Shown here: in pieces, positions 1 to 64,000 of the stretch
Position numbering within the stretch: the first letter of the stretch is position 1
Layout: each line of letters opens with the position of its first letter
Assembly: GCF_032444005.1 (NCBI RefSeq)
Contig: NC_091285.1
Coordinates: 54,932,001-54,996,000, forward strand
Direction: 5' to 3'
Source: Ranitomeya imitator
Taxonomy: Eukaryota
DNA: 64,000 bases
Notes under the pieces: model-generated
The model's input: only the letters and a program-made list of their open reading frames with translations
Databases searched by the model: none
What the model was told of the DNA's origin: nothing
Position numbers and translations under genes: made by a program

Positions 1-2793
1 CAGGGGTACACGGGCAGCAGTGGTCTGGTCAGTGGAAGTCTAGTGGAAGGAGTGACCGCAGACAGGCATCGAAGGCCTAAAATAATAACACATGGCTGTA
101 GGCAATTTTAAATTGGTTCCAGGGGTACACGGACAGCAGTGGTGTGGTCAGTGGAGGCCTAGTGGAAGGAGTCACCGCAGACAGGCATCGAAGGCCTAAA
201 ATAATAACACATGGCTGTAGGCAATTTTAAATTGGTTCCAGGGGTACACGGGCAGCAGTGACCTGGTCAGTGTAGTAGTAGTTGAAAGAATGGACCGCAG
301 ACAGGCATCGAAGGCCTAAAATAAAAAAATTGGGCTGGCTGTAGGCAATTTTAAATTGGTTCCAGGGGTACACGGGCAGCAGTGACCTGGTCAGTGTAGT
401 AGTAGTTGAAAGAATGGACCGCAGACAGGCATCGAAGGCCTAAAATAAAAAAATTGGGCTGGCTGTAGGCAATTTTAAATTGGTTCCAGGGGTACACGGG
501 CAGCAGTGACCTGGTCAGTGTAGTAGTAGTTGAAAGAATGGACCGCAGACAGGCATCGAAGGCCTAACATAACAAACTTGGGCTGGCTGTAGGCACTTTT
601 AAATTGGTTCCAGGGGTACACGGGCAGCAGTGGTCTGGTCAGTGGAAGTCTAGTGGAAGGAGTGACCGCAGACAGGCTTCCAAGGCCTAACATAACAAAC
701 TTGGGCTGGCTGTAGGCACTTTTAAATTGGTTCCAGGGGTACACGGGCAGCAGTGACCTGGTCAGTGTAGTAGTAGTTGAAAGAATGGACCGCAGACAGG
801 CATCGAAGGCCTAAAATAAAAAAATTGGGCTGGCTGTAGGCAATTTTAAATTGGTTCCAGGGGTACACGGGCAGCAGTGACCTGGTCAGTGTAGTAGTAG
901 TTGAAAGAATGGACCGCAGACAGGCATCGAAGGCCTAAAATAAAAAAATTGGGCTGGCTGTAGGCAATTTTAAATTGGTTCCAGGGGTACACGGGCAGCA
1001 GTGACCTGGTCAGTGTAGTAGTAGTTGAAAGAATGGACCGCAGACAGGCATCGAAGGCCTAAAATAAAAAAATTGGGCTGGCTGTAGGCAATTTTAAATT
1101 GGTTCCAGGGGTACACGGGCAGCAGTGACCTGGTCAGTGTAGTAGTAGTTGAAAGAATGGACCGCAGACAGGCATCGAAGGCCTAAAATAAAAAAATTGG
1201 GCTGGCTGTAGGCAATTTTAAATTGGTTCCAGGGGTACACGGGCAGCAGTGACCTGGTCAGTGTAGTAGTAGTTGAAAGAATGGACCGCAGACAGGCATC
1301 GAAGGCCTAAAATAAAAAAATTGGGCTGGCTGTAGGCAATTTTAAATTGGTTCCAGGGGTACACGGGCAGCAGTGGTGTGGTCAGTGGAGGCCTAGTGGA
1401 AGGAGTGACCGCAGACAGGCATCGAAGGCCTAAAATAATAACACATGGCTGTAGGCACTTTTAAATTGGTTCCAGGGGTACACGGGCAGCAGTGGTCTGG
1501 TCAGTGGAAGTCTAGTGGAAGGAGTGACCGCAGACAGGCTTCGAAGGCCTAACATAACAAAATTGGGCTGGCTGTAGGCACTTTAAATTGGTTCCAGGGG
1601 TACATGGGCAGCAGTGTATGGTCAGTGGAAGTCTAGTGGAAGGAGTGACGGCAGACAGTCTTCGAAGGCCTAACATAACAAAATTGGGCTGACTGTAGGC
1701 ACTTTTAAATTGGTTCCAGGGGTACACGGGCAGCAGTGACCTGGTCAGTGTAGTAGTAGTTGAAAGAATGGACCGCAGACAGGCATCGAAGGCCTAAAAT
1801 AAAAAAATTGGGCTGGCTGTAGGCAATTTTAAATTGGTTCCAGGGGTACACGGGCAGCAGTGACCTGGTCAGTGTAGTAGTAGTTGAAAGAATGGACCGC
1901 AGACAGGCATCGAAGGCCTAAAATAAAAAAATTGGGCTGGCTGTAGGCAATTTTAAATTGGTTCCAGGGGTACACGGGCAGCAGTGACCTGGTCAGTGTA
2001 GTAGTAGTTGAAAGAATGGACCGCAGACAGGCATCGAAGGCCTAAAATAAAAAAATTGGGCTGGCTGTAGGCAATTTTAAATTGGTTCCAGGGGTACACG
2101 GGCAGCAGTGACCTGGTCAGTGTAGTAGTAGTTGAAAGAATGGACCGCAGACAGGCATCGAAGGCCTAAAATAAAAAAATTGGGCTGGCTGTAGGCAATT
2201 TTAAATTGGTTCCAGGGGTACACGGGCAGCAGTGACCTGGTCAGTGTAGTAGTAGTTGAAAGAATGGACCGCAGACAGGCATCGAAGGCCTAAAATAAAA
2301 AAATTGGGCTGGCTGTAGGCAATTTTAAATTGGTTCCAGGGGTACACGGGCAGCAGTGGTGTGGTCAGTGGAGGCCTAGTGGAAGGAGTGACCGCAGACA
2401 GGCATCGAAGGCCTAAAATAATAACACATGGCTGTAGGCACTTTTAAATTGGTTCCAGGGGTACACGGGCAGCAGTGGTCTGGTCAGTGGAAGTCTAGTG
2501 GAAGGAGTGACCGCAGACAGGCTTCGAAGGCCTAACATAACAAAATTGGGCTGGCTGTAGGCACTTTAAATTGGTTCCAGGGGTACATGGGCAGCAGTGT
2601 ATGGTCAGTGGAAGTCTAGTGGAAGGAGTGACGGCAGACAGTCTTCGAAGGCCTAACATAACAAAATTGGGCTGACTGTAGGCACTTTTAAATTGGTTCC
2701 AGGGTAACACGGCCAGCAGTGGCCTGGTCAGTGTAGTAGTTGTAGAAAGAAGGGACCGCAGACAGGCTTCGAAGGCCTAACATAACAAAAATG
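1..2793. repeat. Tandem array of ~119-124 bp units (~23 copies), 3' of the element 1 transposase
   Basis: caggggtacacgggcagcagtg recurs at 1, 120, 239, 363, 487, 611, 734, 858 and onward; several recurrent unit variants. Confidence 0.97.
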
Positions 2794-3249
2794 TCAAAAC
2801 AATGGTATTGTCAGTGCCAGGCATTGAAGGATGTCAGCGGCTAGACTACACATTGGTGAAGCTGTGAGAGATAATTTTGCTAGTGGTAGAGCACTGTTTG
2901 AGCTGGGGGGGGGAACTGTCTTGTGGCCGGCGGTACAGGCACAGGGCCCCTCATATTACAACGGTGTGTCTGACGTTGGGTGCGCACCACCACCGCCAGA
3001 GACACTTTATTGTACTATGAGGGACCCAGTGGCAGTGCCGTCGACCAAAAGCGGCCACACCCACCTCTTCAGACAAACAGCACTCTCAAGGGTCCAAGCG
3101 CAAAGTGGCGATAGCACGGCCCCGTGTGGGGAGTTTGGCCATTTCGTGAGGTGGAAACATGTCGTATGCTGGACAATCAGGTGAAGAAAATTACGAGATT
3201 GGAAAAGTCATTCAGAATAGTCCACAGGCAAGACCTTTTCATAGGAAAG

Positions 3250-6200
3250 CTAGGTGTCAGCCGGGCAGGGTGGGGCAAAAGATTTTGAAATCCAGTTGTG
3301 GTTCATTTTAATGAAGGTTAGATCATCTACATTTTGGGTAGCCAGACGAGTCCTTTTTTCTGTTAGTATTGAACCTGCAGCACTGAATACTCTTTCTGAT
3401 AGGACACTAGCTGCCGGGCAAGCAAGCTCCTGCAATGCATATTCTGCCAATTCTGGCCAGGTGTCTAATTTGGATGCCCAGTAATCAAATGGGAATGACG
3501 GTTGAGGGAGAACGTCGATAAGGGATGAAAAATAGTTTGTAACCATACTGGACAAATGTTGTCTCCTGTCACTTTGAATTGATGCTGCAGTACCTGTCCT
3601 GTCTGCGGTCATAGAAAAATCACTCCACAACCTGGTCAGAAAACCCCTCTGTCCAACGCCACTTCTGATTTCTGCCCCTCTAACACCTCTGGTCTGCTGG
3701 CCCCTGGAGCTCGTGTGAGAACGATCACGGGCGCTGTGTGCAGGGAATGCCAGAAGCAAACGGTCAACAAGAGTTGATTGTTTTGTTGCTAATATTAGTT
3801 CCAAGTTCTCATGTGGCATAATATTTTGCAATTTGCCTTTATAGCGAGGATCAAGGAGGCAGGCCAACCAGTAATCGTCATCGTTCATCATTTTTGTAAT
3901 GCGTGTGTCCCTTTTGAGGATACGCAAGGCATAATCCGCCATGTGGGCCAAAGTTCCCGTTGTCAAATCTGCGGTTGTGCTTGGTTGAGGGGCAGTTGCA
4001 GGCAAATCTACGTCACTTGTGTCCCTCAAAAAACCAGAACCCGGCCTTGCCACGCCACCAATTTCCCGTGCCCCCGGGAAAGCTTCCTCATTAAAAATAT
4101 ACTCATCCCCATCATCCTCCTCATCCTCCACCTCCTCTTCGCCCGGTACCTCGTCATGTACACTGCCCTGACCAGACAATCGCTGACTGTCATCAAGGCT
4201 TTCCTCTTCCTCTGGTGCAGACGCCTGATCCTTTATGTGCGTCAAACTTTGCATCAGCAGACGCATTAGGGGGATGCTCATGCTTATTATGGCGTTGTCT
4301 GCACTAACCAGCCGTGTGCATTCCTCAAAACACTGAAGGACTTGACACATGTCTTGAATCTTCGACCACTGCACACCTGACAACTCCATGTCTGCCATCC
4401 TACTGCCTGCCCGTGTATGTGTATCCTCCCACAAAAACATAACAGCCCGCCTCTGTTCGCACAGTCTCTGAAGCATGTGCAGTGTTGAGTTCCACCTTGT
4501 TGCAACGTCTATGATTAGGCGATGCTGGGGAAGGTTCAAAGAACGCTGATAGGTCTGCATACGGCTGGAGTGTACAGGCGAACGGCGGATATGTGCGCAA
4601 AGTCCACGCACTTTGAGGAGCAGGTCGGATAACCCCGGATAACTTTTCAGGAAGCACTGCACCACCAGGTTTAAGGTGTGAGCCAGGCAAGGAATGTGTT
4701 TCAGTTGGGAAAGGGAGATGGCAGCCATGAAATTCCTTCCGTTATCACTCACTACCTTGCCTGCCTCAAGATCTACAGTGCCCAGCCACGACTGCGTTTC
4801 TTGCTGCAAGAACTCGGACAGAACTTCCGCGGTGTGTCTATTGTCGCCCAAACACTTCATAGCCAATACAGCCTGCTGACGTATGCCAGTAGCTGCCCCA
4901 TAATGGGAGACCTGGTGTGCAACAGTGGCAGGTGCGGATGGAGTGTTTGTGCGACTGCGGTCTGTGGACGAGCTCTTGCTTCTGCAGGAGGACGAGGAGG
5001 AGGAGGAGGAGGGGGTGCGAACGGCTACAGACAACTGTTTACTAGACCGTGGGCTAGGCAGAACTGTCCCAAACTTGCTGTCCCCTGTGGACCCTGAATC
5101 CACCACATTTACCCAGTGTGCCGTGATGGACACGTAACGTCCCTGGCCATGCCTACTGGTCCATGCATCTGTTGTCAGGTGCACCTTTGTGCTCACAGAT
5201 TGCCTGAGTGCATGGACGATGCGCTCTTTAACATGCTGGTGGAGGGCTGGGATGGCTTTTCTGGAAAAAAAGTGTCGACTGGGTAGCTCGTAGCGTGGTA
5301 CAGCGTAGTCCATCAGGTCTTTGAAAGCTTCGCTTTCAACTAACCGGTAGGGCATCATCTCTAACGAGATTAGTCTAGCTATGTGGGCGTTCAAACCCTG
5401 TGTACGCGGATGCGAGGCTAAGTATTTCCTTTTTCTAACCATAGTCTCATGTAGGGTGAGCTGGACTGGAGAGCTGGAGATCGTGGAACTAGCGGGGGTG
5501 CCGGTGGACATGGCAGACTGAGAGACGGTGGGAGATGGTATTGTTGCCGCCGGTGCCCTAGATGCAGTGTTTCCTACTACGAAACTGGTGATTCCCTGAC
5601 CCTGACTGCTTTGGCCTGGCAAAGATACCTGCACAGATACAGCAGGTGGTGCGCTAAATGGTGGTCCTACACTGCCGGAAGGGATGTTGCGTTGATGACT
5701 AGCTTCATTGGCCGAGGGTGCAACAACCTTAAGGGACGTTTGGTAGTTAGTCCAAGCTTTCAAATGCATGGTGGTTAAATGTCTATGCATGCAACTAGTA
5801 TTGAGACTTTTCAGATTCTGACCTCTGCTTAAGGAAGTAGAACATTTTTGACAGATGACTTTGCGCTGATCAATTGGATGTTGTTTAAAAAAATGCCAGA
5901 CTGCACTCTTTCTAGCATCGGATACCTTTTCAGGCATTGCAGACTGAGCTTTAACCGGATGGCCACGCTGTCCTCCACCAGGTTTTGGCTTTGCCACGCG
6001 TTTTGGGCAAGATACGGGCCCGGCAGATGGAACCTGTGGCGATGTTGATGCCTGCTGCGGCCCCTCCTCCTCCTCTGCTTCAGAACTGCTGCCGCCTGCA
6101 CCCTGTTCCCCCAATGGCTGCCAATCGGGGTCAAGAACTGGGTCATCTAATAACTCTTCTTGTACCTCCTGCGCAACTTCGTCTGTGTCACCGTGTCGTT

Positions 6201-6825
6201 CGGTGGTATAGCGTTCGTGATGGGGCAACATAGTCTCATCAGGGTCTGATTCTTGATCAGCACCCTGCGAGGGCAATGTTGTGGTCTGAGTCAAAGGACC
6301 AGCATAGTAGTCTGGCTGTGGCTGTGCGTCAGTGCACTCCATGTCAGATTCAATTTGTAATGGGCATGGACTGTTAACTGCTTCACTTTCTAAGCCAGGG
6401 ACGGTATGTGTAAAGAGCTCCATGGAGTAACCCGTTGTGTCGCCTGCTGCATTCTTCTCTGTTGTTGTTTTTGCTGAAGAGGACAAGGAAGTGACTTGTC
6501 CCTGACCGTGAACATCCACTAACGACGCGCTGCTTTTACTTTTACCAGTTTCACGAGATGAGGCAAAAGAGCTAGAGGCTGAGTCAGCAAGATAAGCCAA
6601 AACTTGCTCTTGCTGCTCCGGCTTTAAAAGCGGTTTTCCTAATCCCAGAAAAGGGAGCGTTCGAGGCCTTGTGTAGCCGGACGACGAACCTGGCTCCACA
6701 GCTCCAGACTTAGGTGCAATATTTTTTCCCCCACGACCACCTGATGCTCCACCACTACCACTACCCTCATTACCAGCTGACAATGAACGCCCCCGGCCAC
6801 GACCTCTTCCACTAGACTTCCTCAT
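3250..6825 (-). CDS. hAT-superfamily transposase, 1191 aa, intronless (ZBED-like)
   Basis: BED finger (VWHFF..C..C..H..H); TTDAWTS (D1); VSDNGRN (D2); CLAHTLNL (CxxH); TRWNST; C-terminal dimerisation region WPELAEYALQELACPAASVLSERVFS (E). No stops or frameshifts. Confidence 0.95.
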   Translation of the reverse strand: MRKSSGRGRGRGRSLSAGNEGSGSGGASGGRGGKNIAPKSGAVEPGSSSGYTRPRTLPFLGLGKPLLKPEQQEQVLAYLADSASSSFASSRETGKSKSSASLVDVHGQGQVTSLSSSAKTTTEKNAAGDTTGYSMELFTHTVPGLESEAVNSPCPLQIESDMECTDAQPQPDYYAGPLTQTTTLPSQGADQESDPDETMLPHHERYTTERHGDTDEVAQEVQEELLDDPVLDPDWQPLGEQGAGGSSSEAEEEEGPQQASTSPQVPSAGPVSCPKRVAKPKPGGGQRGHPVKAQSAMPEKVSDARKSAVWHFFKQHPIDQRKVICQKCSTSLSRGQNLKSLNTSCMHRHLTTMHLKAWTNYQTSLKVVAPSANEASHQRNIPSGSVGPPFSAPPAVSVQVSLPGQSSQGQGITSFVVGNTASRAPAATIPSPTVSQSAMSTGTPASSTISSSPVQLTLHETMVRKRKYLASHPRTQGLNAHIARLISLEMMPYRLVESEAFKDLMDYAVPRYELPSRHFFSRKAIPALHQHVKERIVHALRQSVSTKVHLTTDAWTSRHGQGRYVSITAHWVNVVDSGSTGDSKFGTVLPSPRSSKQLSVAVRTPSSSSSSSSCRSKSSSTDRSRTNTPSAPATVAHQVSHYGAATGIRQQAVLAMKCLGDNRHTAEVLSEFLQQETQSWLGTVDLEAGKVVSDNGRNFMAAISLSQLKHIPCLAHTLNLVVQCFLKSYPGLSDLLLKVRGLCAHIRRSPVHSSRMQTYQRSLNLPQHRLIIDVATRWNSTLHMLQRLCEQRRAVMFLWEDTHTRAGSRMADMELSGVQWSKIQDMCQVLQCFEECTRLVSADNAIISMSIPLMRLLMQSLTHIKDQASAPEEEESLDDSQRLSGQGSVHDEVPGEEEVEDEEDDGDEYIFNEEAFPGAREIGGVARPGSGFLRDTSDVDLPATAPQPSTTADLTTGTLAHMADYALRILKRDTRITKMMNDDDYWLACLLDPRYKGKLQNIMPHENLELILATKQSTLVDRLLLAFPAHSARDRSHTSSRGQQTRGVRGAEIRSGVGQRGFLTRLWSDFSMTADRTGTAASIQSDRRQHLSSMVTNYFSSLIDVLPQPSFPFDYWASKLDTWPELAEYALQELACPAASVLSERVFSAAGSILTEKRTRLATQNVDDLTFIKMNHNWISKSFAPPCPADT

Positions 6826-7189
6826 TGTTTTAAAAACGTAACCAAACTAACGTTATTTGTTGCAGTCACACAACTTACACGGTGAGCTATAACTTCTGTA
6901 TGATTTAGCTACCCCTTTACAGGTTGGTGAGACCACAGCGAAAATCAGGCCCAATGTTACACACTCTTTTTTTGGTGGCTGCAAATTAGAGAGATGCCCC
7001 ACACGCAGGACTGTCACTGAAGCACAAATGTTAATATTAATGTCACACTATTATTTTTTTTTTATTTTTATTTTTTTCAGGAACACTTTAGAAACCCCCC
7101 AAAAAAAAAAAAATAGATTTTTGCAGGGAGAATTTAGAAAACAAATGTAACAAACTATATGCTTTCTATGGGCCACTGAGTGAGAGATG

Positions 7190-9164
7190 ACGCACACAGG
7201 AATCAGGAGTGGCACACAAGCCCAGAGGCCAATATTTTTCTACCAATGATTGATGGAGTTATTTTCTCTGGTAGATTTTGGAACCCAAATCAAGGAAAAA
7301 AAATGTAGGCTTTCTATGGACCACAATTGGAGAGAGAGAGAGAGAGAGATGGCACACCCAGGAGTCAAGACTGGCACACAAGCAGAAAGGCCAATATTAA
7401 TCTCCCACTGTTTTTTTTGGTTGTTTTTTTTTTTTTTTTTTTCAGGGAGACTTTAGAAAAAAAAATAATAAAAAAAATATGATTTTATCAGGAAGAATTT
7501 AGAAACCAAATAAAATAAAATGATTTTTTCAGGGAGAATTTATAAAACAAATAAAACCAAAAATAGGCGTTCTATGGCCCACTGACTGAGAGATGACGCA
7601 CCCAGGAGTCAAGACTGGCACACAAGCAGAAAGGCCAATATTAATCTCCCACTGTTTTTTTTGGTTGTTTTTTTTTTTTTTTTTTTCAGGGAGACTTTAG
7701 AAAAAAAAATAATAAAAAAAATATGATTTTATCAGGAAGAATTTAGAAACCAAATAAAATAAAATGATTTTTTCAGGGAGAATTTATAAAACAAATAAAA
7801 CCAAAAATAGGCGTTCTATGGCCCACTGACTGAGAGATGACGCACCCAGGAGTCAAGACTGGCACACAAGCAGAAAGGCCAATATTAATCTCCCACTGTT
7901 TTTTTTGGTTGTTTTTTTTTTTTTTTTTTCAGGGAGACTTTAGAAAAAAAAATAATAAAAAAAATATGATTTTATCAGGAAGAATTTAGAAACCAAATAA
8001 AATAAAATGATTTTTTCAGGGAGAATTTATAAAACAAATAAAACCAAAAATAGGCGTTCTATGGCCCACTGACTGAGAGATGACGCACCCAGGAGTCAAG
8101 ACTGGCACACAAGCAGAAAGGCCAATATTAATCTCCCACTGTTTTTTTTGGTTGTTTTTTTTTTTTTTTTTTTCAGGGAGACTTTAGAAAAAAAAATAAT
8201 AAAAAAAATATGATTTTATCAGGAAGAATTTAGAAACCAAATAAAATAAAATGATTTTTTCAGGGAGAATTTAGAAAACAAATAAAACCAAAAATAGGCG
8301 TTCTATGGCCCACTGACTGAGAGATGACGCACCCAGGAGTCAAGACTGGCACACAAGCAGAAAGGCCAATATTAATCTCCCACTGTTTTTTTTGGTTGTT
8401 TTTTTTTTTTTTTTTTCAGGGAGACTTTAGAAAAAAAAATAATAAAAAAAATATGATTTTATCAGGAAGAATTTAGAAACCAAATAAAATAAAATGATTT
8501 TTTCAGGGAGAATTTATAAAACAAATAAAACCAAAAATAGGCGTTCTATGGCCCACTGACTGAGAGATGACGCACCCAGGAGTCAAGACTGGCACACAAG
8601 CAGAAAGGCCAATATTAATCTCCCACTGTTTTTTTTTTTTTTTTCAGGGAGACTTTAGAAAAAAAAATAATAAAAAAAATATGATTTTATCAGGAAGAAT
8701 TTAGAAACCAAATAAAATAAAATGATTTTTTCAGGGAGAATTTATAAAACAAATAAAACCAAAAATAGGCGTTCTATGGCCCACTGACTGAGAGATGACG
8801 CACCCAGGAGTCAAGACTGGCACACAAGCAGAAAGGCCAATATTAATCTCCCACTGTTTTTTTTTTTTTTTTTCAGGGAGACTTTAGAAAAAAAAATAAT
8901 AAAAAAAATATGATTTTATCAGGAAGAATTTAGAAACCAAATAAAATAAAATAATTTTTTCAGGGAGAATTTAGAAAACAAATAAAACCAAAAATAGGCG
9001 TTCTATGGCCCACTGACTGAGAGATGACGCACACAGGAGTCAGGAGTGGCACACAAACCCAGAGGCCAATATTTTTCTACCAATGATTGATGTAGTTATT
9101 TTCTCTGGTAGATTTTAGAACCCAAATCAAGGAAAAAAAATATAGGCTTTCTATGGACCACAAT

Positions 9165-9221
<57 letters not shown>

Positions 9222-9480
9222 CACCCAGGAGTCAAGACTGGCACACAAGCAGAAAGGCCAATATTAATCTCCCACTGTTTTTTTGGTTGTTTTTTTTTTT
9301 TTTTTTTTTCAGGGAGACTTTAGAAATAAAAATAATAAAAAAAATATGATTTTATCAGGAAGAATTTAGAAACCAAATAAAATAAAATGATTTTTTCAGG
9401 GAGAATTTAGAAAACAAATAAAACCAAAAATATGCGTTCTATGGCCCACTGACTGAGAGAGAGAGAGAGATGGAACGCTT
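7190..9480. repeat. Tandem array of ~228-244 bp units with poly(T)/poly(A) tracts and an (AG)n run at ~9167-9216
   Basis: ggagtcaagactggcacacaagcagaaaggccaatattaatctccc recurs at 7605, 7849, 8092, 8336, 8579 and 8807. Confidence 0.95.
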
Positions 9481-9559
9481 AGTACTGGCACACAAGCCCA
9501 AAGGGCAATATTAATCTCCCTTTTTTTTTCCAGGGAGAATTTCTGAAACCCAAAAAAAA

Positions 9560-10520
9560 AATAAAATAGGCTTTCTATGGCCCACTATTTGTGAGAGAGA
9601 TGGGACGCTCAGGACTGGCACAGATGGCACGCTCAGGACTGGCACAGAAGCCCAGAGGCCAATATTAATCTCCCTTTTTTTCTGGGAGAATTTATAAAAC
9701 CAAAAAAATATTTAAATAGGCTTTCTATGGCCCACTATTTGTGAGAGAGATGGCACGCTCAGGACTGGCACAGATGGCACGCTCACAACTGGCACAGAAG
9801 CCCAGAGGCCAATATTAATCTCCCTTTTTTTCTGGGAGAATTTATAAAACCAAAAAAATATTTAAATAGGCTTTCTATGGCCCACTATTTGTGAGAGAGA
9901 TGGCACGCTCAGGACTGGCACAGATGGCACGCTCACAACTGGCACACAAGCCCAGAGGCCAATATTAATCTCCCTTTTTTCAGGGAAAATTTATAAAACC
10001 AAAAAAAAAATTAAATAGGCTTTCTATGGCCCACTATTTGTGAGAGAGATGGCACGCTCAGGACTGGCACAGATGGCACGCTCACAACTGGCACACAAGC
10101 CCAGAGGCCAATATTAATCTCCCTTTTTTCAGGGAAAATTTATAAAACCAAAAAAAAAATTAAATAGGCTTTCTATGGCCCACTATTTGTGAGAGAGATG
10201 GGACGCTCAGGACTGGCACAGATGGCACGCTCAGGACTGGCACAGAAGCCCAGAGGCCAATATTAATCTCCCTTTTTTTCAGGGAGAATTTATAAAACCC
10301 AAAAAAAAATAAAATAGGCTTTCTATGGCCCACTATTTGTGAGAGAGATGGCACACTCAGGACTGGCACACAAGCCCAAAGGCCAATATTAATCTCCCAC
10401 TGTATTTTTATCAGGGAGAATTTATACACCCCACAAAAAAAAATACAGAAAAATGAAAAGGCTTTCTATGGCCCACTATGTGAGAGAGATGGCACACACA
10501 GGGATGGCACTCTAGCAGAA
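9560..10520. repeat. Tandem array of ~150 bp units related to the 244-bp array
   Basis: ctatggcccactatttgtgagagagatg recurs at ~9579, 9729, 9879, 10028, 10177, 10327 and 10470, and shares motifs with the 244-bp unit. Confidence 0.93.
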
Positions 10521-11039
10521 ATGCCAAATTGCCAATCTTAATCTCCCACCAAAAAAAAAAAAAAAAAAAAAACAGGGAATGTCCTACAATTACTATCTCC
10601 CTGCCTGCAGTAATCTCAGCCAGGTATGGCAGGCAGCTACTATCTCCCTGCCTGCAGTAATCTCAGCCAGGTATGGCAGGCAGCAATAAGGAGTGGACTG
10701 ATGCACAAATGAAATAAAAAGTGTGGACAAACAAAAAAGATAGCTGTGCAGAAAGGAAGGAACAAGAGGATTTGTGCTTTGAAAAAAGCAGTTGGTTTGC
10801 ACAGCGGCGTACACACAGCAATGCAGCTATCAGGGAGCCTTCTAGGGCAGCCCAATGAGCTACAGCGCTGAGGGGAAAAAAAAAAAAAAAAAAAATTCCA
10901 CTGTCCCTGCACACCGAGGGTGGTGTTGGACAGTGCAAATCGCTGCAGCACAAGCGGTTTTGTGGTTAATGGACCCTGCCTAACGCTATCCCTGCTTCTG
11001 ACAAAGCGGCAGCAACCTCTCCCTAAGCTCAGATCAGCA

Positions 11040-11195
11040 GCAGTAAGATGGCGGTCGGCGGGAACGCCTCTTTATAGCCCCTGTGACGTCGCAGACAGCA
11101 AGCCAATCACTGCAATGCCCTTCTCTAAGATGGTGGGGACCAGGACCTATGTCATCACGCTGCCCACACTCTGCGTTTACCTTCATTGGCTGAGA
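11040..11195 (-). promoter_or_regulatory. Putative internal Pol II promoter of hAT element 1
   Basis: Read on the minus strand: CCAAT (11189-11185), ATTGG (11107-11103), GACGTCA (11090-11084), TATAAA (11076-11071), CGCCATCTT YY1-like (11053-11045). The same order is seen in element 2. Confidence 0.6.
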
Positions 11196-11406
11196 AATGG
11201 CGCTTTTCGCGTCATTGAAACGCGACTTTGGCGCGAAAGTCGCGTACCGCATGGCCGACCCCGCACAGGGGTCGGATCGGGTTTCATGAAACCCCGACTT
11301 AGCCAAAAGTCGGCGACTTTTGAAAATGTTCGACCCGTTTCGCTCAACCCTACTCACAACAATAGTATCAACATTAACCAATATACTGCAAGTCTAGCTT
11401 TCATAC

Positions 11407-17470: not shown

Positions 17471-18147
17471 AGGTCACGGAGCTGCATTTTAAAGGCTTTT
17501 CCCAAGTTATCTATCAGCAGTGCACCGCCCGGTTTCTTGTTTGTGGTGGGTGGAGTGATCTTCATTGACAGCTGGAATTATGGTGCCGCTAGCCCAAACT
17601 GTAAACTCTCTGAGGCTGCAAGCAGAGGCAGCTTAGCTTTTGTAACATAAGAGAAGTGCAGGGGCACTAAAGCTGGCACATCCAGCAATCCAGACAACTT
17701 CAAAGCAGCACTTGCAAACTCTTTTAAAATCAAAGTATTTGGAATCTAACAAGTAAAATGTGTTAAATCCAAGTGGATCTGATAGCGCCTATAGTACTTT
17801 GATTTAACAACAATTTACTCATTAGTTGCCAAATACTTTGTTTGCTAATATTTCTGCAACAGGAGGCAAATTATACAAAAAGTGTTTTGTTCTACTCTGC
17901 AGCCACTATTACATTGTGTATCCAGTTCAGCATAAAAATTGATGAAATGTACTCTTTAAGGAGAACTGTGTTGGACAGCAAACAGTACCATCTGATACTC
18001 ATGGTCTCCACTGTTAATAACTGTTTTGACTACCATATGTCTAGTAGACCCCTATGATTAGATATAGTAGGCATAGAACGGCTATAGAAGGTGGATGCTC
18101 CTTGGCAGATTTATAGATATAAGAAGATAAAACTAGGCACTTTCTAG

Positions 18148-19083
18148 TAGGGTTGAGCGACCTTTACTTTCATAGGATTGGGTCGGGTTTCACGAAAAAA
18201 AAGTCGGGGTCGGGGTCGGCCGAAACCTGAAACCCAATGCAGTGCATTGGGTTTCCATGGTTCACAGGGTCTGAAGGAGCGGAAACTCTCCTTCAGGCCC
18301 TGTGATCCATATTTTAGTGTAAAATAAAGAATTAAAATAAAAAATATCACAATACTTACCCTCTGACGCGCCCTGGTACTAACCGGGAACCTTCCTTCCT
18401 TAGAATCAGCCTTCCAGGACCTTGCGGTGATGTCGCGGTGACGTCGCGGCTTGTGATTGGCTGGGCGGCCGCCCATGTGACCGCTCGCGCGACCAATCAC
18501 AAGCCGCGACGTCACCGCGAAGTCACCGAAGGTCCTGGAAGGGCTGATTCTTAGGAAGGAAGGCTGCCGGAAAGAAGCAGGGTGCGTCCGAGGGTGAGTA
18601 TATACCTAATAGGAATATACTCACCCTCGGACGCGCCCTGCTTCTTTCCGGCAGCCTTCCTTCCTAAGAATCAGCCCTTCCAGGACCTTCGGTGACGTCG
18701 CGGCTTGTGATTGGTCGCGTGAGCGGTCACATGGGCGGCCGCGCGGCCAATCACAAGCCGCGACGTCACCGCGACGTCACCGCAAGGTCCTGGAAGGCTG
18801 ATTCTAAGGAAGGAAGGTTCCCGGTTAGTACCAGGGCGCGTCAGAGGGTAAGTATTGCGATATTTTTTATTTTAATTCTTTATTTTACACTTAAATCTGA
18901 ATTCCAATACCAATTCCCGATATAAACATATCGGGAATCGGTATCGGAATTCCGATTCTAGATTCAAAAGATCGCCGACTTCATGGCCGACCCCACACAG
19001 GGGTCGGGTCGGGTTTCATGAAATCCGACCTTGCCAAAAGTCGGCGACTTTTGAATATTTTCGACCCGTTTTGCTCAACCCTA
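18148..19083. mobile_element. hAT MITE (936 bp) with 8-bp TSD and a large internal palindrome
   Basis: TIRs TAGGGTTGAGCGA / TTGCTCAACCCTA; perfect TSD CTTTCTAG at 18140-18147 and 19084-19091. Confidence 0.95.
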
Positions 19084-19704
19084 CTTTCTAGTTGACCCCT
19101 GGACATATTAGAATTCAGGTTGTATCTTCTAAACAAATAAAAAAAGATGTGAATGGACCCCAAGATATAGATATCCAACATTGCTTACTAGAGCTACAAT
19201 ATTGCTTTCTGTCACATTACAATTTCATGATATTATTATGAATGTACAGCATCAAAACAAATTGAACTGTAACTTAGATTTTTCTTAAAAGAGATTTCTG
19301 ACAAGCAAATCACAAAGTTGCCAGGTTTGGTGAAATTCAAAAAATTTGACACAATTTCAATTTGCATCAAAGTGATTTCATCATCTCTGTTAGCGAGGAA
19401 AGTGATTTGACCACAGACAATATCTTAAAATAAATGCTTCCACATGCAGAAATTAAAAGCTAGTATGGTTTACAGTATATTGTTACTTTAAGGAAATGTG
19501 TGGTTCAACCTTTAATACTATAATTACAAGACCATGGAAGTAAAACAGTAAAAATATATTTAATATTATAAATGTAAATTCTTATTACAGCTCATTTTCA
19601 TATGCCTAGTCTACTTTAAATGTCCTATGCAACTTACAAGAAAGTAGCTTGATATAATACCTATTTCAGAAGTTTGAAGAACATAGATAAAAACTCTACC
19701 TTAC

Positions 19705-51465: not shown

Positions 51466-51473
51466 GTCGCGTC
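51186..51473. repeat. (TA)n microsatellites flanking an L2-like LINE 3' tail (~51246-51412, minus strand)
   Basis: Two (TA)n runs. Between them the minus strand reads gtagaatgtaagcccgcaagggcag...ggtgctatataaataaat(aat)n. Confidence 0.7.
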
Positions 51474-56761: not shown

Positions 56762-57154
56762 TTATAATCCACATAAGCCTCGGGCTCCTGATACCCAGAT
56801 TCTATGCTCTGACTCCGTGGAAACGTTCTCGTAGCCTCCTGGAGTCCTGTATATCTCCTCTGTGCTTCCTTCCTGTCTGTCCTCGCACACAGACTTTCTG
56901 TACAGACTAAACTCACTAAGCCTCCAAACCAGGATCTTTATTCAGGGAAGCTGCCCTAAAACAGGGTTTTGAGCTTCCCCTCCTGGCCTGGATTTGGAAG
57001 GTGTTGTATGTGTGATAACTAGTGTTGAGCATTCCGATACCGCAAGTATCGGGTATCGGCCGATATTTGCAGTATCGGAATTCCGATACCGAATTCCGAT
57101 ACTTCCCGCGTATCGGATACCGGAATCGGAAGTTCCCAGAATTCAAATTGAACG

Positions 57155-57295
57155 CAGCAGCCAATGAGGAATGAATGAAAGTGTGGGCACATCCTGTTTA
57201 GCATGGTGGGCATGTAAGTACTGGCAAGGCTGGGATTGGCTGCTGAAATGATGTCACTCTGCACTATAAAAAAGCGCTGCCGCCATTTTGTGCTC
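57155..57295 (+). promoter_or_regulatory. Putative internal Pol II promoter of hAT element 2
   Basis: CCAAT 57161, ATTGG 57235, TGATGTCA 57249, TATAAA 57265, CGCCATTTT (YY1-like) 57281. Confidence 0.6.
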
Positions 57296-57559
57296 ACTCT
57301 GCTGTGATTTCAGTTAGGGACAGGACGCTGTGTTCTAACTGAGGGCCAGTTGAGCTTGCTAATTGCTTTATTTTCCTTTCCAAAGGCTAATTTAGCAAAA
57401 CGCTGTGTTCTTCACTGTTCACCTTGCTCTTGCCTTGCAGCGCTGTTTTAACAGCGTTCGGCAAGGTCTCTGTGTGTGTGTGTGCAGCTCACTCTGTAGT
57501 CTGTGTGCAGCCATATACCCGGTTGTATTCAGCTCAGGGGGGGTTCACACTGCCTCACA

Positions 57560-58790
57560 CAGTTGTTCTTTTTTGCTCTTAGTGCAGCCTGCTGCACATT
57601 TTTTCTCAAATTTCCTATTAGTGTTTTTCCACCAGTCTCCAGCTCTATTGTGGAAAAACACTACATAGGATAACCTAGAGGGGGGTTTTAGGGCCTTGCA
57701 GCGCCGTTTACGGCTGTCTGCACGGTCTCCGTGTGAGCCCAGCTCGCCCTGCAGTCTGTGTGCAGCCATAGCCGGTTGGATTCAGCTCAGGGTTCGTTAC
57801 TGGCTCATACCTTGAGAAAAATTTTCCTTTTTTTCAAATAGTGCAGCCTGTTTAAAATTTGAAAAAAAAAATTCCTATTAGTGTCTTTCCACTCGTATCC
57901 AGCTAAATAGTGGAAAAACACTATATAGGATAACCTAGAGGAGGGTTTTTTGGCCTTGCAGCGCCGTTTACGGCTGTCTGCACGGTCTCCGTGTGAGCCC
58001 AGCTCGCCCTGTAGTCTGTGTGCAGCCATAGCCGGTTGGATTCAGCTCAGGGTTCGTTACTGGCTCATACCTTGAGAAAAATTTTCCTTTTTTTTCAAAT
58101 AGTGCAGCCTGTTTAAAATTTGAAAAAAAAAAAATCCTATTAGTGTCTTTCCACTCGTATCCAGCTAAATAGTGGAAAAACACTATATAGGATAACCTAG
58201 AGGAGGGTTTTTTGGCCTTGCAGCGCCGTTTACGGCTGTCTGCACGGTCTCCGTGTGAGCCCAGCTCGCCCTGTAGTCTGTGTGCAGCCATAGCCGGTTG
58301 GATTCAGCTCAGGGTTCGTTACTGGCTCATACCTTGAGAAAAATTTTCCTTTTTTTGAAATAGTGCAGCCTGTTTAAAATTTGAAAAAAAAAAATTCCTA
58401 TTAGTGTCTTTCCACCAGTCTCCAGCTCAATTGTGGAAAAACACTACATAGGGTAACCTAGAGGGGTTTTTTTGGGCCTTGCAGCGCCGTTTACGGCTGT
58501 CTGCACGGTCTCTGTGTGAGCGCAGCTCGCCCTGTAGTCTGTGTGCAGCCATAGCCGGTTGGATTCAGCTCAGGGTGCGTTACTGCCTCATACCTTGAAA
58601 AACAATTTCCTTTTTTTCAAATAGTGCAGCCAGTTTAAAATTTGAAAAAAAAAATTCCTATTAGTGTCTTTCCACTTGTATCCAGCTAAATAGTGGAAAA
58701 ACACTATATAGGATAACCTAGAGGAGGGTTTTTTGGCCTTGCAGCGCCGTTTACGGCTGTCTGCACGGTCTCCGTGTGATTTAAACTAGC
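57560..58790. repeat. Tandem array of ~260 bp units (~5 copies) upstream of the element 2 transposase
   Basis: gcgccgtttacggctgtctgcacgg at 57701, 57961, 58223, 58484 and 58744. Confidence 0.95.
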
Positions 58791-58992
58791 TCTGTAGCCC
58801 GATCTGCACCAAAAAAAAAGTTAAGTTCACCAAACACAACTTAACACTTGTGTAGGCCACATTTGAAAAATAATAAAGTTTAGTCCACAATTTACAACAT
58901 TAGTGTTTCTTACACCTGTTAGGAGGAGCATTACAGGAATAAGCACACTAAGGCCTTAGTACTTTTCTGCTTATCTTTATCTGTCAACCAAG

Positions 58993-61900
58993 ATGAAGAG
59001 GGCAGGGAGTAAGGCACGTGGGCGTGGGCGCGGAGCAGGGAGAGGACGTGGTGATTCTGTGCCTGCTGCGGGCGCCGGTGACTCGTCGTCACTCAGTTTC
59101 AGCAGGGAACAGTCCTTCATGCGCAGCTTTGTCGGAGAGCGCCGTGCACCGCTGCTGCGTGAAGACCAAATTGAAGCCGTTGTCGGGTGGATGGCAGCTA
59201 ACGCCTCGGCATCGACTTCAGTTAGTGCCACATCCTCTCAGGCACAGAGCACTGGAGAGCAGCCATCTGTCTCTTCACCACCTGCCAAATTGGCCAGGCA
59301 GTCAGAGAGCCCAGGACAGGAGCCGTCTCTACTTCTGTTCTCTGAATCTCTTGGCTTGGAAACAGGGGGCCAGCCAAGCAGCATTGGAGAAATGGAAGAA
59401 GAGGCAGTGTGCAGTGATGCCCAACACCTTTTTCTCTCTGACTCTGAAGAGGCAGGTGGGCCAGTGCCTCCGGTGACCACAGCGCAGTACGCATCTGATG
59501 ATGAAACTCAGGTGCCGCTTTCTCGTGCGTACTGTGCTGCTGAGACTACCCAGGAGGAGCAGTTGGTGGCAGAGGGTAGTGGAGATGATGAGGTCCTTGA
59601 CCCATCGTGGCGTGAGGAACAGGAAGGTGGTGGGAGCAGCTCAGAGGAAGAGCTTCCTCTTACGGGCCAAAGAGGGAGAGGGAGGGGGAAGACTGCGGAG
59701 CCTGTAGCCTCCACTTTGGCACCCGTTAGGAGCCTGTCTCTTTCCAAAGCCAAAAAGGGCGCTCCCAAGACTTGCAGTGCCTGGTCCTTTTTTGACACAG
59801 TTGCAGATGACATTTGTTTTGTCAAATGCAAGCTGTGTCATCAGAAAGTAAAAAGAGGGAAAAATGTCAGCAACCTCAATACCACAAATATGTGGAAACA
59901 TGTGCGGACCAGGCACGCGGTGGAGTTACAGAAACACACTGAAGATGTAGGCCAACCAACAGCGGCAGCTACCACCTCTTCAGCTCGTGTTGCCTCTTCC
60001 TCCAGCTCACGCACAGCTGGTTTGGCTTCCTCCCAGAGACCTTGTGTAATTCCACCCACAGCACCACCTTCCCAGTCATCCTCACACTCCCAGTCTACTC
60101 TACAGCCATCGGTAGTACAGGCATGGGAGAAAAGGCGGGCATTCTCGGCCAACCACCCCCGAGCACAGGCTCTGAATGCAGGCATTGCCAAACTGTTGTC
60201 CCTGGAAATGCTCTCGTTCAGGCTGGTGGAGACTGACAGCTTCCGTGACTTGATGGCATTGGCAGTCCCACAGTACAAGGTGCCCAGCCGCTTTTACTTC
60301 AGCAGGCAGGCTGTCCCTGCCCTGCACAGGCATGTTGAGGCAAACATAAAACATGCGCTACTGAACGCCGTCAGTAGCAAGGTCCACCTCACCACCGATG
60401 CGTGGACCAGTCAGCATGGACAGGGGCGATATGTTTCCCTCACTGCCCATTGGGTTAATGTTGTTGAGCCAGGTACAGATCGTGCGAGTGGCGCAGGACG
60501 TGTCCTGCCCACTCCAAGGATTGCAGGAATCCAGTCTGTACGCATCGACTCCTCCTCTTACACCAGTTCCTCTGATTCCTCTCTGCAGGATCCGTCACAG
60601 TCCACCCCCACATGGACCCGTGAACGTTTACCTATGACCGACATGAGCACAGCCGTGGCCAAACGTCAGCAGGCCGTCTTGAAACTAGTTTCATTGGGGC
60701 ATCGAAGCCACACAGCGCAGGAGCTCTGGAATGCCATCAAGCAGGAGAGCGATGTGTGGTTACTGCCAGCGAATCTCCAGCCAGGCATGGTAGTGTGTGA
60801 CAATGGCCGAAATCTGGTGGCAGCTTTGGCCCTTGGCAACCTCACTCACATCCCATGTCTGGCACATGTGCTCAATTTGGTTGTGCAGAGTTTTCTGAGG
60901 GACTATCCGGATCTTGATGCCCTGCTGCACAAGGTCCGCCTAGAGTGTGCTCACTTGCGGCGTTCCAGCTTGGCCAGATCCCGCATTGCTGCTCTGCAGC
61001 GCAGATTCCGCCTTCCGGAACACCGCATCATATGTGACCTACCTACCCGGTGGAATTCCACGTTACATATGTTGGAGCGGTTGTGTGAGCAGCAGCAAGC
61101 AGTTATGGAGTACCAGCTGCATCAGGCGCAAAGAAGTCGCAGTCAGCGCCGATCAGACTTCACAACCACAGAGTGGGCCACTCTGAAGGACGTCTGCCAG
61201 GTTTTGCGTCCTTTTGATTATTCCACGCGGATGGCAAGTGCAGATGATGCACTAGTCATCATGACTGTCCCCCTTATCTGCCTGCTTCAGCAAACTTTGC
61301 AAGGGTTAAGGGATGATGTGGTGGAAGAGGTGGAGGATGAGGAGTCACCTTTTCCATCAGCTTCTGGAGAGTCAGCGCCACGTGGTTCCTCACAAAGGGG
61401 TACACAGGGGCCAATTTGTGAGGAGGATGAGGAGGAGTCAATGGACGAGGAAGAGCTCCGTCCAGAGGAGGGAGCGACACAATTGTCCAGTGGTCAGTGT
61501 GTACAGCGAGGGTTGGGTGATGACGAGCGGGCAGAGATCATGTCTCAAGCAGGGGACAGCGTTTCTGGGCCGGTTGGCACTCTGCAGCACATGGTGGATT
61601 TTATGCTGCAGTGCCTGAGAAACGACCGCCGCATCGACCACATTCTCAACATGCCTGATTATTGGGTGTTCACCCTCCTCGATCCTCGCTACCGGGACAA
61701 CGTCCAAAACCTCATCCCTGCGTTGACCCGGGAGCGTAAATTGCGAGAGTACCACGACACACTGGTGAATTCCATCATCTTCTCCTGTCCAACTGAGAGG
61801 AGTGCTGCTAGTGCTTTACAAAGCAGCTCAGTGCGTCGAGGCAGTGGGGGAGGCTCTGCCCAAAGAGGGAGCAGAAGCAGTGCCTCTGCCCAAGGCAAGC

Positions 61901-62289
61901 CGAGTATGGCACAACTCTGGCACACTTTTGTGTGCCCGCCCCAAATGTCTACACCATCACCGGCGGCTCCAGTCAGCAGGAGGCAACGGTTCCGTCAGAT
62001 GGTGACAGACTACATGGCTTGCCCTCTTACTGTACTCCCCGACGGCTCTTCCCCGTTCAAGTTTTGGGTCTCTAAGCTGGATACATGGCCAGAGCTAAGC
62101 CAGTATGCATTGGAGGTGCTGGCTTGCCCTGCGGCTAGTGTCTTATCGGAACGTGTCTTTAGTGCCGCAGGTGGTGTACTAACAGACCGTCGCATGCGAC
62201 TATCCTCCGATAACGTTGACCGGCTTACTTTCCTGAAAATGAACCAGGCCTGGATCTCGCAGGAATTTGCCACTCCTCTGCCTGATTAA
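58993..62289 (+). CDS. hAT-superfamily transposase, 1098 aa, intronless (ZBED-like)
   Basis: BED finger (AWSFF..C..C..H..H); TTDAWTS; VCDNGRN; CLAHVLNL; TRWNST; WPELSQYALEVLACPAASVLSERVFS. Intact. Confidence 0.95.
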   Translation: MKRAGSKARGRGRGAGRGRGDSVPAAGAGDSSSLSFSREQSFMRSFVGERRAPLLREDQIEAVVGWMAANASASTSVSATSSQAQSTGEQPSVSSPPAKLARQSESPGQEPSLLLFSESLGLETGGQPSSIGEMEEEAVCSDAQHLFLSDSEEAGGPVPPVTTAQYASDDETQVPLSRAYCAAETTQEEQLVAEGSGDDEVLDPSWREEQEGGGSSSEEELPLTGQRGRGRGKTAEPVASTLAPVRSLSLSKAKKGAPKTCSAWSFFDTVADDICFVKCKLCHQKVKRGKNVSNLNTTNMWKHVRTRHAVELQKHTEDVGQPTAAATTSSARVASSSSSRTAGLASSQRPCVIPPTAPPSQSSSHSQSTLQPSVVQAWEKRRAFSANHPRAQALNAGIAKLLSLEMLSFRLVETDSFRDLMALAVPQYKVPSRFYFSRQAVPALHRHVEANIKHALLNAVSSKVHLTTDAWTSQHGQGRYVSLTAHWVNVVEPGTDRASGAGRVLPTPRIAGIQSVRIDSSSYTSSSDSSLQDPSQSTPTWTRERLPMTDMSTAVAKRQQAVLKLVSLGHRSHTAQELWNAIKQESDVWLLPANLQPGMVVCDNGRNLVAALALGNLTHIPCLAHVLNLVVQSFLRDYPDLDALLHKVRLECAHLRRSSLARSRIAALQRRFRLPEHRIICDLPTRWNSTLHMLERLCEQQQAVMEYQLHQAQRSRSQRRSDFTTTEWATLKDVCQVLRPFDYSTRMASADDALVIMTVPLICLLQQTLQGLRDDVVEEVEDEESPFPSASGESAPRGSSQRGTQGPICEEDEEESMDEEELRPEEGATQLSSGQCVQRGLGDDERAEIMSQAGDSVSGPVGTLQHMVDFMLQCLRNDRRIDHILNMPDYWVFTLLDPRYRDNVQNLIPALTRERKLREYHDTLVNSIIFSCPTERSAASALQSSSVRRGSGGGSAQRGSRSSASAQGKPSMAQLWHTFVCPPQMSTPSPAAPVSRRQRFRQMVTDYMACPLTVLPDGSSPFKFWVSKLDTWPELSQYALEVLACPAASVLSERVFSAAGGVLTDRRMRLSSDNVDRLTFLKMNQAWISQEFATPLPD

Positions 62290-62400
62290 TTAATTGGGTG
62301 TCATCCAGGTCTTCTGCTGTGTTCATCTTTCTACCACCTGAACTGCTATTCCTGGGCTCCAACACCGCCAGTTGCGGCTCAGAAGTGCAGGCTGCACAGT

Positions 62401-63362
62401 CGTTTGTTACTGAAAGAGCCATCTTGTGCAGCAGTAATGCTGCACAAGGAAAAGGTAGCTATTTTTTTTTGGCTCCTTGCACACGCAGAACTTAACACTT
62501 ATAAAATGTGTTCACTGATACCGTTATACCGTCCCGGAGCTGGGACTTTCCTTCGTAATGTGACGCAGCACAGCCGTCATTCCTACCCCCTTGGTGCCAT
62601 GCGCTGCCTCCTCAGCGTTGTTTTAAGCTGTCACGGAGCCTGCGCTGTTCTGTTATCCCTTGGCCATGCCCTATTTGCGCTGCCTGTCTTCTGACATAAT
62701 TTGGTGTCAGGCTGGCTGCGCCTGTGCGGCCGCGCTGCCATAGATCCCGCCTCGCAGTGTCTTCTGATTGAGTCACACTGCGGGCCTGGGATCCATGGGC
62801 ATGCGCAGTGCATATCTTCCCCTCGGGCTCTCGCTCATTTCCCTCCGCCTTCTTTAGACTGTGCGCCATCAGCTGATCCCTAATAGCATGCCACGGCCGT
62901 GACAACGCACAGTCTGAAGAAGAGGGAAGGAGGGGAGTGAGAGTCGAGGATATGCACTGTGCATGCCCATGGATCCAAGGCCCGCAGTGGGATTACGTTA
63001 GACGAGACTGCGAGGTGGGATCTGGAGCAGCGTGGACGCAAAGGCACTGACAGCCTGACACCAAATTATGTCAGAAGACAGGCAGCGCTAATTGGGCATG
63101 GCCAAGGGCTAACAGAACAGCGCAGGCTCCGTGACAGCTTAAAACAACGCTGAGGAGGCAGCACACGGCACCAAGGGGATAGGAATGACAGCTGTGCTGT
63201 GTCCCATTACGAAGGAAATTTGCACCTCCGTGACGGTTTAACGGTATAAGGGGACACATTTTTAGTGTTTACTTCTGTGTTTGCAAGGAGCATAATTAAA
63301 AGAGCAACCTTTTCATTTTGCATCCTTAGCGCTGCACAAGATGGCTCTTTCAGCTACAAACG
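62401..63362. repeat. Long imperfect inverted repeat (~465-bp arms, ~40-nt loop at 62866-62905)
   Basis: cgtttgttactgaaagagccatcttgtgcagc pairs with gctgcacaagatggctctttcagctacaaacg; pairing continues inward to agactgtgcg / cgcacagtct. Confidence 0.92.
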
Positions 63363-63435
63363 TCTTGGGGGGGGGGGTTAAGGGTTCCCTTTCAACTTGC
63401 TCCAATCAGGCTTCGGCCTACACTCTGTTCCTCTG

Positions 63436-64000
63436 CTCCTCCTGCTGTCCCTGGGCTCTAACACCGCCAGTTGGTGCCTGGAAGTGCTGTGTGCACAGTC
63501 AACAGTCGCTCCTCTGTTATTGGGGTTCAGTAACGTCAGCTGATCCCCAGCTGTGTGTGCGGTAATACCTCCAATCTGCTCCTCCTGCTGTCCCTGGGCT
63601 CTAACACCGCCAGTTGGTGCCTGGAAGTGCTGTGTGCACAGTCAACAGTCGCTCCTCTGTTATTGGGGTTCAGTAACGTCAGCTGATCCCCAGCTGTGTG
63701 TGCGGTAATACCTCCAATCTGCTCCTCCTGCTGTCCCTGGGCTCTAACACCGCCAGTTGGTGCCTGGAAGTGCTGTGTGCACAGTCAACAGTCGCTCCTC
63801 TGTTATTGGGGTTCAGTAACGTCAGCTGATCCCCAGCTGTGTGTGCGGTAATACCTCCAATCTGCTCCTCCTGCTGTCCCTGGGCTCTAACACCGCCAGT
63901 TGGTGCCTGGAAGTGCTGTGTGCACAGTCAACAGTCGCTCCTCTGTTATTGGGGTTCAGTAACGTCAGCTGATCCCCAGCTGTGTGTGCGGTAATACCTC
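63436..64000. repeat. Tandem array of 143-bp units (at least 4 copies, continues off the window), 3' of the element 2 transposase
   Basis: ctcctcctgctgtccctgggctctaacaccgcc at 63436, 63579, 63722 and 63865; units are essentially identical. Confidence 0.97.

Follow-up and report, generated by a model that had tools for sequence, protein, structure and literature searches.

Two array-bearing hAT transposons with ATG-free leaders at a poison-frog protocadherin locus

RESULTS

Two hAT elements at the edges of the locus

The DNA analyzed here, referred to as the window, is a stretch of 64,000 nucleotides of the Ranitomeya imitator genome (contig NC_091285.1, positions 54,932,001 to 54,996,000) that does not contain any N. 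It covers a clustered protocadherin locus of this poison frog and has one hAT transposon at each edge. Both elements contain an intact-looking transposase open reading frame (ORF) placed between two tandem arrays, and in both a long leader without any ATG leads from a promoter-like block to the transposase start codon. The following parts were assigned (positions are those of the window).

Element 1:
11353-11360, candidate target duplication CTCACAAC, only one flank visible
11342..11352, minus strand, 5' terminal inverted repeat TAGGGTTGAGC, terminal repeat read as TAGGGTTGAGCG, ending at 11352
11155..11352, minus strand, subterminal region with AAGTCG and GTCGG short repeats (AAGTCG 25 per kb, 0 in the arrays)
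11071..11189, minus strand, promoter-like block (CCAAT 11185-11189, inverted CCAAT 11103-11107, TATAAA 11071-11076)
6826..11154, minus strand, ATG-free leader of 4330 nt, ending at the transposase start codon
7000..10574 (about), minus strand, leader repeat block composed of a 244-bp array, (GA)25, a 150-bp array, and degenerate units on its two margins
9468-10370, minus strand, 150-bp array, 6 copies
9167-9216, minus strand, (GA)25
7344-9073, minus strand, 244-bp array, 7.2 copies (Tandem Repeats Finder)
3250..6825, minus strand, transposase ORF of 1191 amino acids without stops (BED finger, DDE core, hAT dimerization domain)
1..2792, minus strand, 3' array of a 124-bp unit, at least 22.7 copies, continuing past the window edge

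Element 2:
57012-57019, candidate target duplication GTGATAAC, only one flank visible
57020..57140, plus strand, 5' terminal repeat TAGTGTTGAGC and subterminal CCGATAC repeats, terminal repeat read as TAGTGTTGAGCA, starting at 57020
57161..57270, plus strand, promoter-like block (CCAAT 57161-57165, inverted CCAAT 57235-57239, TATAAA 57265-57270)
57252..58992, plus strand, ATG-free leader of 1742 nt, ending at the start codon
57440..58779, plus strand, leader array of a 260-bp unit (homogeneous part 57608-58779, 4.5 copies)
58993..62289, plus strand, transposase ORF of 1098 amino acids (BED, DDE, and hAT dimerization domains)
62343..62401, plus strand, degenerate first 143-type unit directly past the stop codon, 81% identical to the unit
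62398..63365, plus strand, foldback (palindromic) insertion of 968 bp, with arms of 322 nt at 87% and 112 nt at 79%
63432..64000, plus strand, 3' array of a 143-bp unit, at least 4 copies at 100% identity, continuing past the window end

A previous reading of the sequence alone, the sequence-only reading, had proposed the shared layout of end, promoter, leader array, ORF, and trailer array, and every part was found in both elements where that reading had placed it. The claim of intact transposases was borne out by the uninterrupted ORFs with BED, DDE, and hAT dimerization domains. The array positions stood as well, but the inventory had to be extended by the foldback insertion and the degenerate 143-type unit in the trailer of element 2 and by the 150-bp array in the leader of element 1, which had not been itemized.

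Transposases and terminal regions

The assignment to the hAT group is based on the proteins and on the ends. Both ORFs matched the Pfam families PF02892 (zf-BED) and PF05699 (hAT dimerization). The DDE core of element 1 contains the motifs TTDAWTS, DNGRN, CLAH, TRWNST, and SERVFS. The alignment of the Hermes transposase to both ORFs spans DNGRN (second catalytic Asp), CLAH (CxxH), TRWNST (RW), and SERVFS (catalytic Glu), and the first Asp motif TTDAWTS is kept between both ORFs and in their relatives. The transposases are 36% identical overall. They comprise 1.1-1.2 thousand amino acids, including a low-complexity N-terminal extension of ~300 residues, and share a similar basic RGRGRG-type N terminus and a purine at position -3 of the start codon.

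At the visible end, both elements have an 11-bp terminal repeat of the common form TAG(G/T)GTTGAGC. In the first 120-200 bp, the short motifs AAGTCG/GTCGG or CCGATAC reach a density of 20-74 per kb. Clustered subterminal short motifs are the pattern expected of BED-domain binding sites (PMC10368747), and the subterminal repeats are likely to be such sites by analogy. The idea that the arrays are amplified transposase-binding sites was ruled out, as the arrays contain none of the subterminal motifs. The flanking octamers GTTGTGAG, GTGATAAC, and CTTTCTAG, the last one belonging to a short family member described below, all fit nTnnnnAn with T at position 2 and A at position 7, although these are three sites only. 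This is the target preference reported for Hermes (PMC10368747).

Relatives of the transposases were found across frogs, in Dendrobatidae, Aromobatidae, Leptodactylidae, Hylidae, Hyperoliidae, Megophryidae, and Xenopus, the full-length ones having 1059-1146 amino acids. They are annotated as "ZBED4/6-like", which is a mislabel of this frog hAT group by the genome annotation. A tree, for which only a quick calculation was made, placed both elements in a single well-supported clade and there in different lineages, which were separated by sequences of other frog families. Many paralogous transposase lineages were present per species. An exact-sequence search of the protein collection contained neither of the two ORFs. 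In a metagenome scan with the transposase profile, 25 loci were obtained, of which the close ones (L001-L003) measured up to 4.2 kb and showed the ORF only. No second gene was found within the arrays, and Rfam and tRNA scans gave no match.

ATG depletion in the leaders

The longest ATG-free run on each strand of the window is exactly the hAT leader, with 4330 nt on the minus and 1742 nt on the plus strand. In both elements the run starts 14-80 nt before the TATA box and stops at the transposase start codon, and this extent supports the promoter assignment. CCAAT, inverted CCAAT, and TATAAA follow in the same order and at similar spacing in the two elements; beyond the terminal and promoter blocks, their remaining non-coding DNA could not be aligned.

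ATG is the sole trinucleotide of the 64 that is absent from both leaders. In dinucleotide-preserving shuffles, 68 ATG were expected in the leader of element 1 and 18 in that of element 2, and none was observed in either. The antisense strands of the same leaders contain 85 and 16 ATG, respectively, and subterminal regions, ORFs, and trailers contain 9-26 per kb. On the sequence, we read this depletion as selection against upstream start codons. Such selection would imply that the whole leader, including the arrays, is present in the mature mRNA and is scanned. The leader arrays are thus probably transcribed 5'-untranslated region (5'-UTR) that is kept without upstream start codons.

The two leader units differ in their predicted folding. 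The 260-nt unit of element 2 folds very stably (-93 kcal/mol, z -5.9), whereas a z value of -0.8 was obtained for the 244-nt unit of element 1, and no common RNA structure of the two units was found.

Alternatively, the arrays could lie in an intron of the 5' leader or could precede an internal promoter situated close to the ATG, and the ATG-free state could be a by-product of the amplification of units that happened to lack ATG. This would fit leaders of 1.7-4.3 kb, which are unusually long, the strong structure of the element 2 unit, and acceptor-like sequences ~70-170 nt before both ATGs, which were recognized by eye only. It would also fit that selection inside the homogeneous arrays is undetectable. 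However, ATG is missing from the unique leader sequence too (~1.1 kb in element 1 and 0.57 kb in element 2), as well as from leader unit variants that have diverged from each other by 20-32%. With the arrays collapsed to one unit, 28 and 8 ATG were still expected, giving Poisson P values of 5e-13 and 3e-4. The run from TATA box to start codon occurs in two independent lineages, and avoidance of ATG on one strand would be unmotivated in intronic or untranscribed DNA. Among the 15 of 61 contig joints listed, there were no CT..AC ends, the mark of an intron on the minus strand. We consider an intronic or untranscribed position of the arrays improbable.

Composition and origin of the arrays

The visible parts of the elements amount to at least 11,352 bp for element 1 and at least 6,981 bp for element 2, of which arrays make up 56 and 28%, respectively. 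In the window interior the array share is ~9%, compared with 28-56% in the hATs. In element 1, the 150- and 244-bp units of the leader are 68-81% alike; on this basis, the leader block is a single repeat family by sequence, with degenerate units at its edges. The trailer of element 1 begins with 457 bp of unique DNA between the ORF and the 124-bp array. This array has a higher-order period of 8 units (~983 bp), in which the unit lengths 124, 121, 119, 123, 124, 124, 124, and 124 recur, and its identity is higher at offset 983 (94.9%) than at offset 124 (93.3%). The 8-unit period fits growth in place. In element 2, the 968-bp foldback sits in the trailer and splits the first 143-type unit.

The sole AATAAA in the trailer of element 1 is found at 3006-3011, 239 nt past the stop codon. 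Because it precedes the 124-bp array, the 3' array of element 1 may lie outside the mRNA. No AATAAA was found in the visible part of the element 2 trailer.

The arrays of the two elements showed no similarity to each other even with 7-base words, in agreement with the sequence-only reading. That reading had taken the dissimilarity as possible turnover of array sequences at conserved positions. Since the transposases are only 36% identical and the other non-coding DNA is unalignable too, the absent similarity is what plain divergence leads one to expect, and it is uninformative on turnover. No array units were found outside both elements within the 45-kb window interior. The designation of these elements as mobile satellite seeders is plausible by analogy with known systems.

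The same layout in two lineages with 36% protein identity could also mean that the arrays are functional modules under selection, namely a translational brake on the transposase, a source of small RNAs, or spacers for transpososome geometry. The position of the leader arrays within a constrained ATG-free 5'-UTR and the highly structured unit of element 2 agree with this proposal. On the other hand, the elements have neither sequence nor unit length nor folding property of the arrays in common (z -0.8 compared with -5.9), and transposase-binding motifs are lacking. The layout is explained by a neutral account in which arrays persist solely at sites where a hAT can accommodate them, and its occurrence in both elements may simply reflect that a hAT has only two intervals tolerating insertions. 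Selected modules appear to us an improbable explanation as well.

Element 1 in public contigs

Element 1 was present in 20 public runs from nine studies with four organism labels, in which 42-97% of the words sampled from 2793-11352 were found. Runs of only 7-13 million letters were among them. For four runs, two from organism A and one each from B and C, the contigs were aligned on 6001-12000 at 90% likeness. All runs consist of assembled contigs, the depth of which is not readable as copy number. Between 1,842 and 15,287 contigs per run were placed on 6001-11352 and almost none past 11400, and in two runs the loose ends of the contigs, with heterogeneous sequence, begin exactly at 11352. Because the contig pile-up stops and the heterogeneous loose ends start at this position, element 1 is a very abundant element that ends at 11352, the boundary predicted from the sequence.

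The leader array bins of element 1 were covered in organisms A, B, and C at >=90% identity. Contigs of organism B span 6898-7201, from the unique leader preceding the ATG into the first repeat units, with 0-1 mismatch. As the array bins are covered in three organisms and the junction is crossed in organism B, the 5' arrays belong to the family and are not private to the copy in the window. A restriction of the arrays to the two copies, which the sequence-only reading had named as the case that would speak against it, was thus not observed for the 5' arrays of element 1. Its notion of oversized hATs holds for the visible lengths, but these are lower bounds, the far ends lying outside the window. 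The identity of >=90% among the element 1 family arrays of organisms A-C argues against fast turnover. Judged from summed contig depths, which are not copy numbers and from which no claim is made, elements of organism A might contain more array than those of organism B.

The contig data also bear on the possibility that the arrays, at least the 3' ones, are outside the mobile unit, as expansions after insertion, as satellite beside a truncated element, or as assembly artifacts. Both 3' arrays run past the window edges, leaving the far ends beyond the window, and the 143-bp units are 100% identical, as such an origin would allow. Against it, the 5' repeat block is found at high multiplicity in three organisms with its junction to the pre-ATG leader conserved, the DNA from each stop codon to the following array is devoid of terminal repeats, and a degenerate 143-type unit follows immediately on the stop codon of element 2. 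Moreover, 21-bp units form an array just inside the subterminal region of a related hAT 3' end at 52244. Arrays external to the mobile unit therefore have only a slim chance of being the correct explanation.

That the ORFs are domesticated host genes rather than transposons, as the names ZBED4-like or ZBED6-like of relatives in Ranitomeya, Dendrobates, Phyllobates, Anomaloglossus, and other frogs would have it, is hardly credible in view of the terminal repeats, the subterminal repeats, the 8-bp duplication in the family, the very high contig multiplicity stopping exactly at the terminal repeat, the heterogeneous flanks of other copies, and the many paralogous lineages per species.

Related copies and neighboring features

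Another member of the element 1 family was located inside the window:
18140..19091 including the duplications, no strand assigned, non-autonomous element of 936 bp (18148-19083) with terminal repeats at 18148-18158 and 19073-19083

It is flanked on either side by CTTTCTAG, a perfect target duplication of 8 bp, and its right end is ~92% identical to the 5' end of element 1 over ~103 bp. The interior (~18290-18880) is mostly a large nested palindrome. The right arm also contains CCGATA-type motifs, which are typical of the subterminal region of element 2, and because of these motifs the element may be a chimera of the two families.

A solo hAT 3' end was observed at ~51470-52244. It has CCGATA-type subterminal repeats and ends with CGCTCAACACTA (52234-52244). 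Just inside the subterminal region lies its 21-bp array with 18 copies (51633-52029). Neither a partner end nor a matching duplication for this fragment was found in the window.

The protocadherin cluster itself consists of six single-exon ORFs of 793-828 amino acids on the minus strand, between 11401 and 50784, with Cadherin_2, five cadherin repeats, and the protocadherin C-terminal domain. Comparison of the window proteins with public proteins gave matches of 100% and of 73-94% identity from R. imitator and R. variabilis. Elements 1 and 2 are in opposite orientation, and their 5' ends both point toward the cluster. Given the copy number, the placement of hATs on both sides of the cluster is probably a coincidence.

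Tandem arrays not belonging to hATs comprise a 396-bp unit with 3.2 copies and units of 46-62 bp (15257-16529 and 47092-47526). A GC-rich 23-bp minisatellite of ~77 copies occupies 54557-56295, 0.7 kb from the end of element 2, and yields spurious ORFs of 260-690 amino acids in several frames.

DISCUSSION

We regard it as quite likely that elements 1 and 2 are both autonomous, that they represent two old and separate lineages within an Ac-type hAT group found throughout frogs, and that they operate, and have acquired their arrays, as follows. The CCAAT/TATA promoter, situated ~250-280 bp inside the 5' end, would start the mRNA. The leader of 1.7-4.3 kb would be retained in this mRNA together with its arrays, and scanning would proceed through it as far as the first AUG, at which the transposase begins. 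If the elements are currently active, the BED and DDE transposase would bind the subterminal repeats, cut at the 11-bp terminal repeats, and reinsert the element with 8-bp duplications at nTnnnnAn-type targets. We infer that slippage, unequal exchange, or error-prone gap repair generated and enlarged the arrays in situ. The arrays would occupy the sole spare intervals of a hAT, one from the promoter to the start codon, where units must lack ATG, and one from the stop codon to the 3' subterminal region. Every jump would then bring the arrays to a new locus.

Several observations weigh against this scheme. None of the runs, all being assembled contigs, is on record as RNA, and transcription of the leader is deduced from its sequence. 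Selection against ATG after array amplification was not detectable, as the 27 and 15 substitution events are too few. Approximately 5% of random changes would make an ATG, and 0 of the 15 listed copy variants do so, compared with ~0.8 expected. The stable folding of the 260-nt unit of element 2 is a poor fit with easy ribosome scanning. The complete identity of the 143-bp units may reflect either very recent growth or smoothing by the assembler. Finally, the 3' ends and matching target duplications of both elements lie beyond the window, so the sizes of the elements are lower bounds, and the 124- and 143-bp arrays are presumed to be internal. The far ends are expected to have the form GCTCAACCCTA or GCTCAACACTA, followed by CTCACAAC or GTGATAAC.

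A further-reaching proposal would be that the 5'-UTR is an expandable AUG-free array with a function in the element, such as setting the level of transposase translation, and that thousands of loci have received copies of it along with the 3' arrays. We consider this proposal rather unlikely. If it were true, the elements would represent a measurable share of the genome gigantism of poison frogs and a seed bank of their satellites. hAT DNA reaches hundreds of megabases in such genomes and amounts to 255 Mb in Oophaga pumilio (PMC6278860) and to 3.9% of the Dendrobates tinctorius assembly (10.1101/2023.11.06.565769). An array-bearing hAT structure is not described in these two genome papers.

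With at least 11 kb, an intact gene, and a high copy number, element 1 shows how far cut-and-paste elements can swell in a genome of 6-7 Gb. The ATG-free leader is a mark of selection that is readable from sequence, and it would place kilobases of tandem repeats in a functional region of an mRNA. It suggests a simple, testable rule for the repeat units that are able to expand in a leader and offers a way to spot copies that may be active. With these elements, there are specific candidates for DNA transposons that spread satellite seeds in amphibian genomes, and since two lineages are present in one window, their promoter blocks, leaders, and arrays can be compared directly.

Autonomous hAT elements typically measure 3-5 kb, and in maize Ac the transposase begins at the first AUG, after a leader of ~650 nt. 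The frog elements resemble Ac, Hermes, and Tol2 in the 11-bp terminal repeats beginning with TAG, the clustered subterminal short repeats, the 8-bp duplications at nTnnnnAn-like targets, and the order of BED finger, DDE core with CxxH and RW, and C-terminal hAT dimerization domain. They differ in that 28-56% of their visible part is tandem array, in the transposase of 1.1-1.2 thousand amino acids with the low-complexity N-terminal extension of ~300 residues, and in an AUG-free leader of 1.7-4.3 kb that consists largely of arrays. In size, Hermes has ~3 kb (PMC10368747), compared with at least 11.4 kb for element 1.

Vertebrate ZBED4 and ZBED6, which are domesticated hAT genes, share the BED finger, the hAT core, and a similar protein length with the frog sequences. 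The latter, in contrast, occur in many copies, have terminal repeats at their boundaries, and have generated target duplications on insertion.

Tandem repeats that are born inside DNA transposons and spread by their copies can seed satellite-like DNA, as reviewed for the miniature inverted-repeat transposable element Xmix with Xstir and for miDNA4 in Xenopus (PMC9659126), and transposon-borne tandem repeats are also known from Tetris in Drosophila virilis (PMC4079207). The frog arrays likewise ride on a DNA transposon. No free arrays were found outside the frog elements in the window. Xmix/Xstir, miDNA4, and Tetris have carriers that are non-autonomous or of the foldback type, whereas the frog carrier is an apparently autonomous hAT, the arrays of which flank an intact gene, with one block in what is probably a constrained 5'-UTR. 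Taken together, the frog elements are a real and unusual variant within a known class of transposons.

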